Shown here one piece after another: positions 15,533 through 22,400 of a stretch of 64,000 bases of DNA (its first letter is position 1; each line of letters starts with the position of its first letter). The notes below the pieces were generated by a model, which was given only the letters and a program-made list of their open reading frames with translations, did no database searches and was not told where the DNA came from. The DNA lies in contig NC_087247.1 of NCBI RefSeq assembly GCF_037042905.1, positions 39,184,001 through 39,248,000 of the forward strand. The letters run 5' to 3'. This stretch comes from Lytechinus pictus. Taxonomy: Eukaryota. A program made the translations under genes and the position numbers.

Positions 15533-17060
15533 TTAGTTCACATGTATGTGTAAGTAAACCACGCTACCGCAACTGCGCGCATCAAGACATTCTCCTGCAC
15601 TCCATCAACGGCCGATTAGCTCTGCATAGGAGGATTACCATATTATGTGCACAAGTAGGCTGTAAAACAATATGTAAAAATGCTTAAAATTTCCGGTTTT
15701 CAGGCCGATTTCGAGCTCTCATTAGTATGATATTGATAAATAAGGTAACAGTTTCATGAGTTCCTAATAATGAAATTGTCCCTTTTTTCAGAATAGAATA
15801 TCGGTATCGACAAGTTTCATCTCGCGCTTAGGAAGAGGAATAGGAAAAAAGTCATTTTCATATGATGACAAAATGTCCTTACAATTTCCCCGGGTGCTTA
15901 GTCTAAACAATAATTTTTTTTTTAATGGATCGTGCTTCGCGATCGCATCGTTTGTGGAGTACGTTTCATATCCACTTCACAATCCTACGATGCTTGAAAT
16001 AGTGCTTAAATTGACCATTTTCAGATCGCCATCAATTTTTTCAGCTTGCGCTTTATTATGTCAACTTCTGCATCGATATAACAATACCAAACAGACGAGT
16101 TTAGGTGTATCCTAACAACAAGCCGTGGGTTAATAAAGAACTTCGCGATTTACTAAGGGAGAAGGGCGCAGCGCTCCAGCGCTTTCGACTGGAAATACAG
16201 CGTTATGAAAGAAACCCAAAGAAAAATCAAGCAGCAGACGGAAAAATGTAAACGTTCCTACAAAGAAAAGATTGAACGGAACTTTCGATAACCCCAGATG
16301 CAGGATATTACTGGATACAATAAAGATAAATCCAAATCTGTGCCAACCGAACAAGATATTAGTTTTGTTGATGAACTAAACAATTTTTGCTGTCGTTTTG
16401 ATGCTGAAAATTTTGGTAGTGAAAATGAAGAAATCAAAAGTAAGGTGAACGAGATGCCTGATCAAGCACCTATCCAAATTTCTGAGCATGACATAAGAAG
16501 AATAATTTCAGGCTTACAAACACACAAATCTCCCCGGCCAGATGGACTAGGTAACAAGGTACTTAAAGTATACAAGGATCAATTAACCCCAGTATTCACT
16601 AAGTTATTTGAGAAATCCCTCATTTTAGGTAGCATCCCACAGTTATTGGAAACGATTAATAATCATCCCCATTCCAAAAGGAAAACAAATCAAAGAAATT
16701 AATGATTTCAGACCAATATCTCTTACATGCAACGTAATGAAATGTTTGGAGAAAATCGTTCTGAAACATCTCATTAGACAAGTGGGTGACCAGATAGATA
16801 TACACTACTCAAAAAAAGTTAAGGACCACTTTTTAAAACGTACATAAAGATTTTATACAAGGTGTTTTATTTCTGGAAATACCTCAGTACCACTGTCCTA
16901 AATGTCCTTAAACACGCTGTAATCAATTTCACGCATGGGTGGTTTCAGTTGTTGCACAATGTCTCTCGCATCACTGCACATCCTGAAAAGTGGGCCCCGA
17001 GGGGTATCAGCTACCGACATGAAGTGGTAAAAACGAATGTCTGAGTGTCTTTCAGGCAGT

Positions 17061-18089
17061 TCAGTAACGAGTGTGACCACCTCCTGCAGCAATAACGGCT
17101 TCACAGCGCTGTCTCATGGAGCTGATGAGGCGATTGATGTCTCTGACGTCCAGTGCATCCCATGCAGCCTCCAGAGCCACACCCAGCTGCTGCAGTCCAA
17201 GTGGATGGGCTTCGAGCTGCTCGAGACTCCTCCCCATCATGTCCCAGACGTGCTCTGTCGGGTTTAAGTCCGGGGACCTCGCTGGCCACTCCATACGCTC
17301 AATCCCCTGGCCCTCAAGGAACTCGGTCACCACCCTAGCTCGGTGGGCACGGGCATTGTCATCCATGAAAATGATGTTTTGTCCCACATTTTCTGCAAAT
17401 GGCACCACTATAGGTTCAAGGACCTCATCCCTGTACCTCACTCCTGTCATTGCTCCCCCTGGGACCACGTAGAGACGAGTACGGTTGGCGTAGGTGATGC
17501 CTCCCCACACCATGACGCTGCCTCCCCCATAACGGTCATGTTCTGCAATACAGGGGTCTGCAAATCTCTCTCCTGGTCGCCTCCAGACTCTCGAACGTCC
17601 ATCATTGTGGTCAAGGGAAAATCTGCTCTCATCTGTGAACAGAACTCTACGCCATTGCTGTCTGGTCCATCTGACATGCTCCCGGGCCCAGTTGAGACGA
17701 ATTCTTCTGTGAGCAGGGGTGAGTGGGACACACTGAGCTGGCCGTCTGGCATGCATATTGGCTCTGTGAAGTCGGTTACGGATTGTTTGAGTGGAAACAA
17801 TCACTCCAGTTGCTGCAGCGAAGTCATTGTTGAGGCGGCGTGCACTGTGAAAGCGGTTGCGGAGGCTGAGATTCGTCAAGTAGCGATCATCTCTAGGGGT
17901 TGTCGAAACTGGTCCGCCACTGCGGGGTCTCTCGGAGTATAGCCCTGTCTCTCGGTGTCTTTGATTTGCTCTGCTAATGACACTGTGTGACACGCCCATC
18001 ATTCTGGCTGCTCTTCGCTGACTGAGGCCAGCTTCCAGCATCCCTAGGGCTCTGGCTACATCTGTTTCACTTAGGTGGTGTCTTGGCAT
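17061..18089 (-). CDS. Tc1-family DD34E transposase, left copy (342 aa)
   Basis: Paired-like HTH N-terminus, VLFTDESRF, FMDDNARAH, SPDLNPTEH (34 residues between second D and E); ATG at 18089 mirrors 18420. Confidence 0.93.
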   Translation of the reverse strand: MPRHHLSETDVARALGMLEAGLSQRRAARMMGVSHSVISRANQRHRETGLYSERPRSGGPVSTTPRDDRYLTNLSLRNRFHSARRLNNDFAAATGVIVSTQTIRNRLHRANMHARRPAQCVPLTPAHRRIRLNWAREHVRWTRQQWRRVLFTDESRFSLDHNDGRSRVWRRPGERFADPCIAEHDRYGGGSVMVWGGITYANRTRLYVVPGGAMTGVRYRDEVLEPIVVPFAENVGQNIIFMDDNARAHRARVVTEFLEGQGIERMEWPARSPDLNPTEHVWDMMGRSLEQLEAHPLGLQQLGVALEAAWDALDVRDINRLISSMRQRCEAVIAAGGGHTRY

Positions 18090-18415
18090 TGCTGTTGTAG
18101 GCAAGTTGTTGATTGTACAGACTAAAGACGGAAAATGCTTTGGAAGACACTTGTCTTATGGCCCACTGCAATGATGCCAGAGACATCATGAAAGAACTGC
18201 ATGTGTGAAATTGATGTCATTGTGTTTGATGGCATTCTGGACAGCTGTATCTTGGCATTGCTATTGTCAGCAAGTTGTTGATTGTAGAGACTAAAGACAG
18301 AAAATGCTTTGGAAGCCACTTTGTACGGGCACATTGCAATGATGCAAGAGACATGAAAGAACTGCATGTGTGATATTGATTTCATTGTGTTTGATGGCAT
18401 CCTGGACAGTTGGAT
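18082..18415. repeat. Two diverged ~165-169-bp direct repeats forming the palindrome spacer
   Basis: Units 18082-18250 and 18251-18415 both start CTTGGCATTGCT and end GGACAG(C/T)TG(T/G)AT; roughly 85% identical by eye. Confidence 0.85.
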
Positions 18416-18419
18416 AGCA

Positions 18420-19448
18420 ATGCCAAGACACCACCTAAGTGAAACAGATGTAGCCAGAGCCCTAGGGATGCTGGAAGCTGGCCTCAGTCAGCGAAGAGTA
18501 GCCAGAATGATGGGCGTGTCACACAGTGTCATTAGCAGAGCAAATCAAAGACACCGAGAGACAGGGCTTTACTCCGAGAGACCCCGAAGTGGCCGACCAG
18601 TTTCGACAACCCCTAGAGATGATCGCTACTTGACGAATCTCAGCCTCCGCAACCGCTTTCACAGTGCACGCCGCCTCAACAATGACTTCGCTGCAGCAAC
18701 TGGAGTGATTGTTTCCACTCAAACAATCCGTAACCGACTTCACAGAGCCAATATGCATGCCAGACGGCCAGCTCAGTTTGTCCCACTCACCCCTGCTCAC
18801 AGAAGAATTCGTCTCAACTGGGCCCGGGAGCATGTCAGATGGACCAGACAGCAATGGCGTAGAGTTCTGTTCACAGATGAGAGCAGATTTTCCCTTGACC
18901 ACAATGATGGACGTTCGAGAGTCTGGAGGCGACCAGGAGAGAGATTTGCAGACCCCTGTATTGCAGAACATGACCGTTATGGGGGAGGCAGCGTCATGGT
19001 GTGGGGAGGCATCACCTACGCCAACCGTACTCGTCTCTACGTGGTCCCAGGGGGAGCAATGACAGGAGTGAGGTACAGGGATGAGGTCCTTGAACCTATA
19101 GTGGTGCCATTTGCAGAAAATGTGGGACAAAACATCATTTTCATGGATGACAATGCCCGTGCCCACCGAGCTAGGGTGGTGACCGAGTTCCTTGAGGGCC
19201 AGGGGATTGAGCGTATGGAGTGGCCAGCGAGGTCCCCGGACTTAAACCCGATAGAGCACGTCTGGGACATGATGGGGAGGAGTCTCGAGCAGCTCGAAGC
19301 CCATCCACTTGGACTGCAGCAGCTGGGTGTGGCTCTGGAGGCTGCATGGGATGCACTGGACGTCAGAGACATCAATCGCCTCATCAGCTCCATGAGACAG
19401 CGCTGTGAAGCCGTTATTGCTGCAGGAGGTGGTCACACTCGTTACTGA
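18420..19448 (+). CDS. Tc1-family DD34E transposase, right copy (342 aa)
   Basis: Intact ORF with RSGRP, VLFTDESRF, FMDDNARAH, WPARSPDLNPIEHVW and GGHTRY end. Confidence 0.95.
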   Translation: MPRHHLSETDVARALGMLEAGLSQRRVARMMGVSHSVISRANQRHRETGLYSERPRSGRPVSTTPRDDRYLTNLSLRNRFHSARRLNNDFAAATGVIVSTQTIRNRLHRANMHARRPAQFVPLTPAHRRIRLNWAREHVRWTRQQWRRVLFTDESRFSLDHNDGRSRVWRRPGERFADPCIAEHDRYGGGSVMVWGGITYANRTRLYVVPGGAMTGVRYRDEVLEPIVVPFAENVGQNIIFMDDNARAHRARVVTEFLEGQGIERMEWPARSPDLNPIEHVWDMMGRSLEQLEAHPLGLQQLGVALEAAWDALDVRDINRLISSMRQRCEAVIAAGGGHTRY

Positions 19449-22400
19449 ACTGCCTGAAAGACACTCAGACATTCGTTTTTACCACTTCATGTCGGTAGCT
19501 GATACCCCTCGGAGCCCACTTTTCAGGATGTGCAGTGATGCGAGAGACATTGTGCAACAACTGAAACCACCCATGCGTGAAATTGATTACAGCGTGTTTA
19601 AGGACATTTAGGACAGTTGTACTGAGGTATTTCCAGAAATAAAACACCTTGTATAAAATCTTTATGTACGTTTTAAAAAGTGGTCCTTAACTTTTTTTGA
19701 GTAGTGTATATCAGTTTGCTTATAGAGAAATTAGAGGAGTAGACAATGCAATTATGACATTTCTACATAATATATATAATCACTTGGATTACGCAGGTAA
19801 TTCTGTTAGATGCTTATTCGTTGATTTTTCAAGTGCTTTCAACACAATTGTACCGCATATACTTGCTAACAAGCTTGTAGAGATGAAAGCACATCCTACC
19901 CTTATTTTATGGATTCAAGATTTTTTAAACGAAAGACAACAATATGTTCACATGGGAAACGTAAACTCTCATGTCAGATCTATTAGTATTGGAGCGCCCC
20001 AAGGCTGTATGCTTTCCCCAGCGTTATTTTCTATCTACACAAGTAACTGTAAGAGTGTATTGCCATATCACAAAGTATGCCGATGATACGGTAATTTCGG
20101 GTTATATATCATACATCAGAAGTGAAAATGAGTATGTCAGTTGCGTAAATTGGTTTGTAGAGTGGTGTGAACGCCACTACCTCAAATTGAATGTCTCAAA
20201 GACAAAGGAAATGGTCATAGATTTCCGGAGAAATCCACAAGCAAGACAGCAGATTATTATTCAAGGGTCAGAAATTGAAAGAATGCAAACTTATAAATAT
20301 CTGGGAACGACTGTATGTGAATCTCTTGACTGATCACCAAATGTCACTCTGTTGAGGAAAAAGTGCAATCAAAGAATGTATTTCCTGAGAATGATGAGAA
20401 AAATGCACGCGATAGATAAAACTATATTAATTCCCTTTTACAGATCACTAATTGAAAGTGTTGCTACATACAACATCATCTGCTATTTCGGTAATGCTAC
20501 TGCACAAAGATACTAATCAATTTGACAATTAGCCACCGAATGAATGTATGCCCGGATTCTTGATACTTTATACTTTAATCTCTATTCGAACGTTATAATT
20601 TTTGTTACAAGATTTTGACCATGTAAACCCTATGTTTAAATTAAGTTTATTATTCCTGCTAACCTGTCGATGTATTCATATTTGTCATCTCATTTGTAAA
20701 CTGCATTTCCTTGTAAGCATTATTTTGTATTTGTAATGCACCAATGAAAAGCAAATTTCCCGTCAGGGGATAATAAATTTATCAATTCAATTCAATTTAT
20801 TGATTTTCATAGTAAAATAAATGTATCTAGAATGCCGTGATTCTAGGTCTAAACTCTCAAAACTACGTAGTTCGTTCTTTATTCAAAACGTGCTTAATTT
20901 AATTATCCAGTTTCATATCAGAATAGCGCATATCGTTCGCATTATCAATGTAAAAAGATACCCGATTAGTCATCCTTTTCGTGATTTACGAAACATGATT
21001 AGTGTGTCCCGTTCTTAGGTGTAAATCTCTTTTTTTTTTCAATTTTCGCTATGAGAGAGAGAGATAATTCTAATATCAATGGAACCAAATATTGCACAGA
21101 TGTAGATAATTCTAATATTAAACAATAGGGGTATCTTTTAAAAAGGACAGAATTTTGCGAAACTAGATATATTTAATGGATGTATGAAATGAATAATATA
21201 AAATCGTGAGACTTTATCGATGAATAGTTATCTACTGCCCGGTCATTTAAACTTAATCATAGTCCCATGTGTAAAGTTAAATGGAAATTTAGATTGAATA
21301 AATTTTTAGGTAACATCACTAGTTCACATTTTAAGATTGCAGTACTCACATATAATTTTCTTAAATTGCAGTATAGGGTCTCGGTTTGATTAATTAATCT
21401 TACATACAATTAAAACCCTTAGTTAGAGGAATTTTAGATTAAAACTAGAAATTTAATTCGTCATGAGGACGAAATCGGTGATCTGTCTCTTGATTCTCAC
21501 GTATTGTGATCACGATTTTCAAGAAGTTAATTTTTTTTCTCGTAATTCTTATACGTGCGCCCAAGGACAATGTTAAAATGTCTCACAATCTGGATTTGTT
21601 CTTACTCAATGTACATGTGCGACAATTGTGGTTCCATATACCCGAACTGCACAATGATTGGGATATATATTTTGTCAGAATGCCACTCCACTATCAGAGC
21701 TCATTGGAATGCCAGTAAATAAAGCTACCAAGAGGAAATCTGAGATGTTATTGTTAATATCATCATTATTAAACGCCGACTATTCTTCGACAGTTGTTTT
21801 CATAAACGTTGTATCATCAGTGACAATTATATTGGAGTGACCTTCAACAGTGTCACGAAAATATCTTTGTCAGATGCAATGAATGAATTGTATTCATTAT
21901 TCTGCATGTAACATCAAGATCAAATATGAAAGAAATCAGGTGAAATGCTTAGCGATGTTAATTACATTCGACTTAAATAAATAGTTGGCCATGAAGTGGG
22001 AATAGAATTGTAATTTCTCAAAACTTGATTGACGTTTCCTGCAAACTCAAGTGTTATTTTGACAGCTCTTTAAATAGTAATTAACAGCAGTTATTAGATT
22101 GACTTTTACCAGTCTCCATCTTGATTAGCCAGTTCGTTGTGAATTTACTTTTGGTATCCTGCGTGTATTGAACTACTGTAGAATAATACATCTATCAGTA
22201 GTACCTAACCAAACACACGAGTGGATGAAAGTAAAAATGATAATAATAATGAATAATAATAATAAAGTAATGACAATGAAAATGATAATAATAATAATAA
22301 TAATGATAAAACATGTTTGAGATTTATTCGTTTGCAGTAGATTGACAATTCTTTAAATCTCTCTGTGATAAACATCAAACCACCCTTCAGTTAAAATTGT

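Follow-up and report, generated by a model that had tools for sequence, protein, structure and literature searches.

Same-end fold-back derivatives of a Tc1-family transposon in Lytechinus pictus, including a mobile palindrome with two transposase genes

How does a Tc1-type transposon come to consist of two inverted transposase genes bounded by two copies of the same end, and can such a structure move? The question is raised by a palindromic element at positions 16803-19706 of a 64,000-nucleotide (nt) stretch of the Lytechinus pictus genome (NCBI RefSeq assembly GCF_037042905.1, contig NC_087247.1, positions 39,184,001 to 39,248,000 of the forward strand), hereafter called the window. An inverted-repeat search of the window returned arms of 1297 nt at 16797-18093 and 18416-19712 that are 99% complementary and lie 322 nt apart; after trimming of TA and a few palindromic flanking bases, the element proper has arms of 1291 bp each (16803-18093, minus strand, and 18416-19706, plus strand). 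The arms show eight differences from each other, four private to each, with no net insertion or deletion. Each arm holds an intact open reading frame (ORF) of 342 amino acids (aa) plus stop, pointing outward (18089 to 17061 on the minus strand and 18420 to 19448 on the plus strand), and Pfam identifies HTH_Tnp_Tc3_2 and DDE_3 domains in both (~1e-19 for each domain). A direct count places 34 residues between the second D of MDDN and the E of NPIE, hence the DD34E signature, with the D that corresponds to the Sleeping Beauty motif taken as catalytic. The nearest named homologues of the transposase are Tc1-like and Tcb transposases (48-52% identity). Within the whole window, the terminal 22-mer occurs only at 16803 and at 19685-19706, even when three mismatches are allowed, and therefore neither half owns a pair of ends. 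An earlier note, made from the sequence of the window alone, had reported two 1291-bp arms with about eight substitutions and no net indel, a complete DD34E ORF in each arm pointing outward from a 322-bp spacer, and two 3' termini with no further copy in the spacer; all of these observations were borne out.

The element lies within the ORF of a long interspersed nuclear element (LINE), the upstream part of which occupies 16298-16800 and the downstream part 19709-20333 (both plus strand), as read from the ORF list and from comparison with a paralogue; the downstream part, which forms the right flank of the element, additionally matches the reverse transcriptase domain RVT_1. TA adjoins both ends of the element (16801-16802 and 19707-19708), and the two copies are identified as a target-site duplication by an empty site: a 93%-identical paralogue of the LINE on another contig continues uninterrupted across the insertion point (…GATAGATATGTATCAG…). 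Because the paralogue reads through the site, the insertion was precise and removal of the element restores the LINE frame, as the earlier note had proposed. Only two stretches related to the host LINE were found in the genome (93-96% identity), lying 8.5 kb apart on contig C10 (locus L044), and one of these is the empty site.

The centre of the palindrome is not foreign DNA. The spacer is the 5' untranslated region (UTR) of the left copy (18094-18412, minus strand), made of two tandem units of ~168 bp (unit 1, 18094-18246; unit 2, 18247-18412) that are ~88-90% alike and both oriented with the left ORF, a composition that had escaped the first reading of the window. Each unit opens with 16 nt that repeat the ORF start and closes in sequence resembling the inner part of a terminal inverted repeat (TIR). 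The units are followed by three nucleotides, GAT (18413-18415), and then by the right arm, which begins 4 nt before its ATG and has no 5' UTR or other 5' region of its own. In this subfamily the right ORF also has an in-frame ATG at 18366, inside the inverted unit 2, which adds 18 codons (18366-18419) and yields an ORF of 360 aa.

When the spacer was used as a query, at least 40 copies at 99% identity were found in the same genome, and the loci retrieved fall into two main forms: the 2.9-kb palindrome and a conventional monomer of 1896 bp. The monomer consists of a 5' TIR, a partial third unit followed by units 2 and 1 (~2.5 tandem 168-bp units in all), the 342-aa ORF with its ATG at 610, and a 3' TIR; its TIRs are ~195 nt each, identical over the outer 34 nt and ~84% identical overall. 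In monomer coordinates the palindrome, which we call type A, runs from 1896 to 286, through the GAT filler, and from 606 to 1896. Its left (long) arm thus corresponds to monomer 1896 to 606 and comprises the 3' TIR (16803-16997, minus strand, with the same relation to the monomer 5' TIR), the 3' UTR and the complete ORF; its spacer corresponds to monomer 605 to 286; and its right (short) arm is an inverted copy of monomer 606 to 1896 that ends in a second 3' TIR (19512-19706, plus strand). The first 285 nt of the monomer, that is, the 5' TIR and the partial unit 3, are replaced in type A by the inverted copy of 606-1896. By sequence comparison, then, the type A dimer is a derived form of the conventional monomer in which the 5' TIR has been exchanged for an inverted copy reaching from the ORF to the 3' end. 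The window element has the helix-turn-helix and DDE domains, the 34-residue spacing, the TIRs and the TA duplication of Tc1/mariner (DD34E) elements. The canonical layout, a single transposase gene flanked by a 5' and a 3' TIR, is found in the coexisting 1896-bp monomers and not in the window element. Having two ORFs and two 3' ends, the latter thus ranks as a rearranged derivative inside the Tc1 family and not as a canonical member of it.

Several further observations concern the monomer and its 5' UTR. The family 5' UTR (monomer ~215-605; window 18094-18412) appears itself to be the product of an earlier rearrangement; its units join inner-TIR-like sequence to the first 16 nt of the ORF. Some copies carry extra UTR units, seen as junction matches 166 bp apart (contig C5, 38191082 and 38191248) or 335 bp apart (contig C11, 4494160 and 4494495). 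Three monomer-type junction matches lie within 19 kb (G000:C10:17441916-17460645), perhaps because of local hopping or because a small block was duplicated. Logan contigs encoding a 99%-identical protein are ordinary monomers with flanks. Marine, aquatic and echinoderm metagenomes, as well as public runs under ~12 organism codes, contain near-identical 31-mers of the element, a spread which indicates that the family is either common to many close relatives or horizontally transferred.

The type A junction (…CAGCTG-GAT-AGCAATG…) is present at 27 genomic sites on 11 contigs, while a reversed control pattern gave none. Eighteen of these copies are full length (2901-2909 bp) and nine carry secondary deletions or insertions. 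Both ends are present in 23 of the 27, in each case flanked by TA on both sides and by unique, unrelated sequence; all 18 full-length copies are among those in unique TA-flanked sites. Among the full-length copies, singletons make up 107 of the 109 variable columns and the phylogeny is star-like. There are no fixed differences between left and right arms, the number of arm differences within a copy (0-11) is about that seen between copies, and private divergence is ~0.17%. Because variation is almost confined to singletons and no arm difference is fixed, we conclude that the founder's two arms were identical, that it originated a single time and that transposition multiplied it in a recent burst. 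Both ORFs are open in 12 of the full-length copies, one in five and none in one. Judged from these patterns, type A is a young mobile subfamily that moves as one unit on its two 3' ends. The earlier note had suggested as much, proposing that palindromes and monomers at independent TA sites be counted as a check, and the count speaks against a one-off rearrangement. Two of its other suggestions fell. The element is not an obligate dimer, as 1896-bp monomers with a distinct 5' TIR coexist with it (~132 5' ends) and the dimer derives from one of them; nor did the fold-back form at or after insertion in the window, because all 27 sites share one junction and the rearrangement must predate the insertion.

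Palindromes are a known artefact of long-read chemistry, and short-read contigs from four public runs covering 18060-19800 contained none that bridged 18401-18416, showing monomer-type joins only (ORF start to unit 1, and unit 2 to unit 3). Such contigs drop minor variants, however, and with type A at ~7% of copies their failure to bridge is uninformative either way. An assembly artefact, or a fold-back confined to the window locus, would have to place one junction on 11 contigs at 27 loci, all of which have substitutions of their own in both arms and most of which have exact TA flanks and unique surroundings; it would also have to account for deletion derivatives of type A and for the paralogous empty site. 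The shared junction, unique TA flanks and private variants rule out an artefact, a purely local rearrangement and segmental duplication, so that we regard this explanation as hardly credible. Reads add weakly in the same direction: for the junction stretch of another type A copy, six of ten sampled words occur in runs of one organism code and five of ten in all others, an excess of one word. A metagenome collection scanned with the type A junction and with a monomer-junction control gave no match for either, and since the control was also unmatched, the family is absent from that collection.

Six of ~280 private variants in the family are mirrored on both arms of one copy (L023, L003 and L032 of type A, L024 of the class called type B below, and L034; L-numbers denote other loci of the same genome), and in L023 a mirrored frameshift cuts both ORFs to 213 aa. 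This pattern suggests occasional gene conversion between arms or re-copying of one arm.

Type A proved to be one of many such elements. Genome-wide, motifs specific to the 3' TIR number 425 and those specific to the 5' TIR 132, and therefore ~146 elements would carry two 3' ends against at most ~132 conventional ones, the former figure being an estimate from motif counts and not a full census. Monomers were counted by the 5'-TIR motif, as the monomer-junction pattern (367 matches) also catches the unit 1/unit 2 boundary at two mismatches. For a closer count, we took as a sample the contiguous portion of the genome over which the first 100 3' motifs of the listing extend, paired the motifs and inspected the pairs on opposite strands. 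All 23 newly fetched opposite-strand pairs in this sample, as well as both apparent orphans, are 3'-3' fold-backs, and the 62 elements of the sample comprise 41 fold-backs (12 of type A, 4 of type B and 25 others) and 21 monomers. Altogether, every one of the 27 examined opposite-strand 3'-motif pairs that lack the type A junction, together with 10 further type B loci, is a 3'-3' fold-back with TA on both sides. Each examined fold-back with both ends has TA/TA and unique flanks, and TA/TA was found in all but one of the 66 family members examined at both ends. No inverted pair of 5' motifs, as a 5'-5' element would give, was present among the 100 listed. The fold-back derivatives are 1.4-3.1 kb long and usually retain one ORF, and type A retains two complete transposase genes. 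From these counts, same-end fold-backs appear to account for roughly half of the family or more.

Two of the fold-backs share a peculiarity. L066 (2373-2951) and L075 (2579-3157) each contain a ~594-bp insert with its own inverted ends, resembling a MITE (miniature inverted-repeat transposable element), at the identical position in the 3' TIR (monomer 1779/1787, with an 8-bp duplication). The inserts differ by several percent, the host arms are >99% alike, and the central junctions differ; the coincidence could reflect an insertion hot spot or shared ancestry.

We classified fold-backs by their central junction, writing x/y for a long arm that runs from 1896 to x joined to a short arm that runs from y to 1896. 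The 41 sampled fold-backs represent 23 junction classes, 19 of them seen once, so that the window element is one of at least 23 same-end fold-back classes, which could not be seen from the window alone. Type A is class 286/606 (27 copies genome-wide), type B is class 243/1107 (12 copies), class 566/695 has at least four copies and class 213/642 at least two; the copies of A, B and 566/695 all occupy unique TA-flanked sites. Besides type A, 20 inverted junctions could be typed exactly (a set that leaves out L080-L082), and 15 of these show 1-7 nt of microhomology and five a filler of 2-7 nt. Homologous recombination between arms was rejected as their origin, as the junction homologies do not exceed 7 nt; so was nested insertion of one monomer in another, as the junctions are internal-to-internal and contain neither terminal sequence nor TA.

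The breakpoints are strongly asymmetric. In all 23 classes x is at most 716, while y spans 606 to 1733, and in every one of them the long arm traverses all or almost all of the ORF into the 5' UTR or the 5' TIR. Under uniform breakpoints the limit on x has P ~1e-5 for the first 20 classes, and the three classes found later (x = 406, 698 and 716) conform to it. In seven classes the breakpoint lies no more than 131 nt from the 5' tip. The long arm retains the whole ORF in 18 of the 23 classes and has lost the first codons in five; because these five lack a complete ORF, its retention is not what sets the limit.

Did these classes arise separately or by diversification of one ancestor? A 1479 G>C variant is present on all 24 type B arms, and its sole other carrier among 124 aligned stretches is the monomer L018. 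The marker on both arms therefore derives type B from one L018-like monomer, independently of type A, and on this evidence at least two classes are of independent origin, each from a single monomer. The alternative is a single ancestral composite, in which two complete monomers stood head-to-head, 5' end against 5' end, transposed by means of their outer 3' ends and gave rise to all classes by central deletions during abortive gap repair. Abortive gap repair typically leaves microhomologies like those at the junctions, type A has indeed undergone secondary deletions, each junction can formally be written as a central deletion, and L066 and L075 share an insertion site despite their different centres, though inserts that differ by several percent may be independent events at one hot spot. 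One ancestor would, however, not place a rare variant on both arms of type B while leaving it out of type A and the other classes, a distribution that calls for at least two origins with one monomer lineage each. Moreover, a search of the genome for the head-to-head centre (end-TA-end) returned none, inverted 5'-motif pairs are likewise missing from the 100 listed, and the constant reach of one arm to 716 or less is left unexplained. The type B marker and the missing head-to-head centre therefore favour recurrent formation, and we consider the single composite improbable, if conceivable for the classes that carry no such marker. Private divergence is 0.13-0.20% in all groups, monomers included, which on this reading would place up to ~23 formation events, two of them shown to be independent, inside a burst of ~280 insertions. 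Their formation inside the same burst points to a link with the transposition cycle.

We consider it likely that recurrent fold-back repair yields same-end 3'-3' elements, which the family transposase mobilises afterwards. A monomer broken within its 5' ~700 nt would set this off, the simplest cause being that the transposase cuts the 5' end and that a limited amount of the end (0-0.7 kb) is then lost. Primed by an inverted microhomology, copying of the element would then proceed back to its 3' end, either by fold-back priming or by a template switch to the complementary strand. Another possible route is template switching between TIRs during synthesis-dependent strand annealing (SDSA), as proposed for the Goblin MITE; this accounts for perfect ends in situ, but not for the limit on x. 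As DNA bounded by two inverted 3' TIRs would be a substrate for the transposase, supplied in cis or in trans, each new fold-back could become a transposon. If the 3' TIR is the better end, as in Mos1, 3'-3' forms would prosper and 5'-5' forms would be absent.

Several points weigh against recurrent fold-back formation followed by mobilisation. Finished sequences reveal neither the initiating lesion nor the route of repair; every x/y junction is formally also a central deletion of a hypothetical head-to-head composite; and the type A junction itself carries the GAT filler and not a microhomology. The 5' and 3' TIRs do not differ in their outer 34 nt, and therefore any putative advantage of the 3' end must sit further in. 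To these may be added the estimated nature of the genome-wide 3'-3' count and the short-read contigs that stop short of the window junction.

The identical outer ends would also suit a purely passive origin, in which random errors of replication or repair produce the fold-backs and their excess stems from the retained transposase gene or from neutrality, not from better transposition of 3'-3' forms. Most classes are indeed singletons in the sample, and the long arm keeps the whole ORF in most of them. Passive by-products should nevertheless not lack 5'-5' forms where some 146 3'-3' forms are estimated, nor should A, B and 566/695 have been amplified to 27, 12 and at least four copies within the monomers' own short burst, and the five classes without a complete ORF show that ORF retention does not govern the breakpoint limit. 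We therefore judge a passive origin very unlikely.

Recurrent fold-back repair can also be carried a step further. Fold-back formation may be a frequent by-product of the transposition cycle, initiated by a break at the 5' end, with the two-3'-end elements out-transposing the wild type by virtue of a better 3' TIR. This extension, which draws on the occurrence, among the ~280 insertions of a single burst, of at least 23 junction classes that may each have formed separately, we put forward only tentatively and would not ourselves favour. If it were true, the family would present a natural and ongoing replacement of an asymmetric transposon by symmetric, long-TIR descendants, and a directly observable route to foldback and long-TIR elements.

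The family bears on the origin of long-TIR and foldback elements, as the parent, more than 20 breakpoints and the amplified products coexist at ~0.2% divergence. Because they coexist, a formation rule can be read from them: the monomer breaks within its 5' ~700 nt, is joined at an inverted microhomology and is copied as far as the 3' end. It may also bear on why natural Tc1/mariner elements keep unequal, 'suboptimal' ends, as the excess of 3'-3' forms without 5'-5' forms would fit the end preference of Mos1 in vitro. Read-through transcripts of the twin-transposase palindrome would fold into long double-stranded RNA, a 1.3-kb hairpin, and might, as a matter of speculation, feed silencing in the manner of Mu killer; such a ready hairpin source may be relevant to how a host first recognises an invading DNA transposon. 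For annotation, elements of this kind would be mistaken for assembly errors or for a pair of truncated copies.

How, then, does the family compare with known systems? In Tn5, in Tn10 and in the Sleeping Beauty 'sandwich' vector, inverted transposase-bearing units, each with both of its own ends, flank a cargo. The window element resembles these in that two inverted transposase-bearing units move together on outer ends, but its halves are incomplete, with no inner ends and no cargo between them. The analogy to Tn5 and Tn10 composites drawn in the earlier note consequently does not hold: there are no complete units, no internal termini are present, the spacer is the element's own 5' UTR and the right copy is without a 5' region.

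Closer is Goblin, a MITE of Aedes aegypti whose two subterminal regions both trace to the right end of its parent, the Tc1/mariner element Ozma, and are joined at an inverted microhomology (Yang et al. 2013, PMC3814204). Its origin has been explained by SDSA template switching in gap repair, with amplification afterwards (PMC3814204). Like Goblin, the elements described here are same-end Tc1/mariner derivatives that were amplified after formation; both ends come from one end of the parent, and the junctions show microhomology or filler of the kind left by microhomology-mediated end joining, the type A join itself carrying filler. Whereas Goblin is a short, non-coding MITE of a single class, the fold-backs are 1.4-3.1 kb long, usually bear an ORF and fall into at least 23 classes with at least two origins. 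Mos1 offers a functional parallel: constructs with two right inverted repeats (IRs) were 26 times more active than the natural pair and those with two left IRs 50 times less active (Auge-Gouillou 2001, as cited in PMC4505599). The construct with two right IRs likewise has two 3'/right ends, and the order of activities matches the 3'-3' excess and 5'-5' absence seen here; these were, however, laboratory constructs with 28-bp IRs differing at four positions, whereas the present elements occur naturally and the 5' and 3' TIRs of the family agree over the outer 34 nt, differing only deeper inside.

Mu killer of maize is a single, non-amplified Mutator-element locus known for its silencing activity (PMC3440606). 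The likeness is at the structural level only, that is, an inverted duplication expected to give a long hairpin RNA on read-through, and in contrast to Mu killer the same-end palindromes are multi-copy and mobile. Foldback elements and long-TIR MITEs, among them FB, Galileo and the C. elegans PAL/CeleTc families (listed in PMC3814204), also consist mostly of one long inverted repeat; they have no known origin, and sub-repeats or non-coding sequence usually form their arms, whereas here the arms are the transposase gene, and the parent and breakpoints can be read. Our literature searches, incomplete in coverage and hence no proof of novelty, returned no description of a twin-transposase Tc1 palindrome. 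Compared with known same-end fold-backs, the family is unusual in three respects: one of its forms carries two intact transposase genes, its fold-backs have at least two origins and at least 23 junction classes, and they make up about half or more of a young transposon family.

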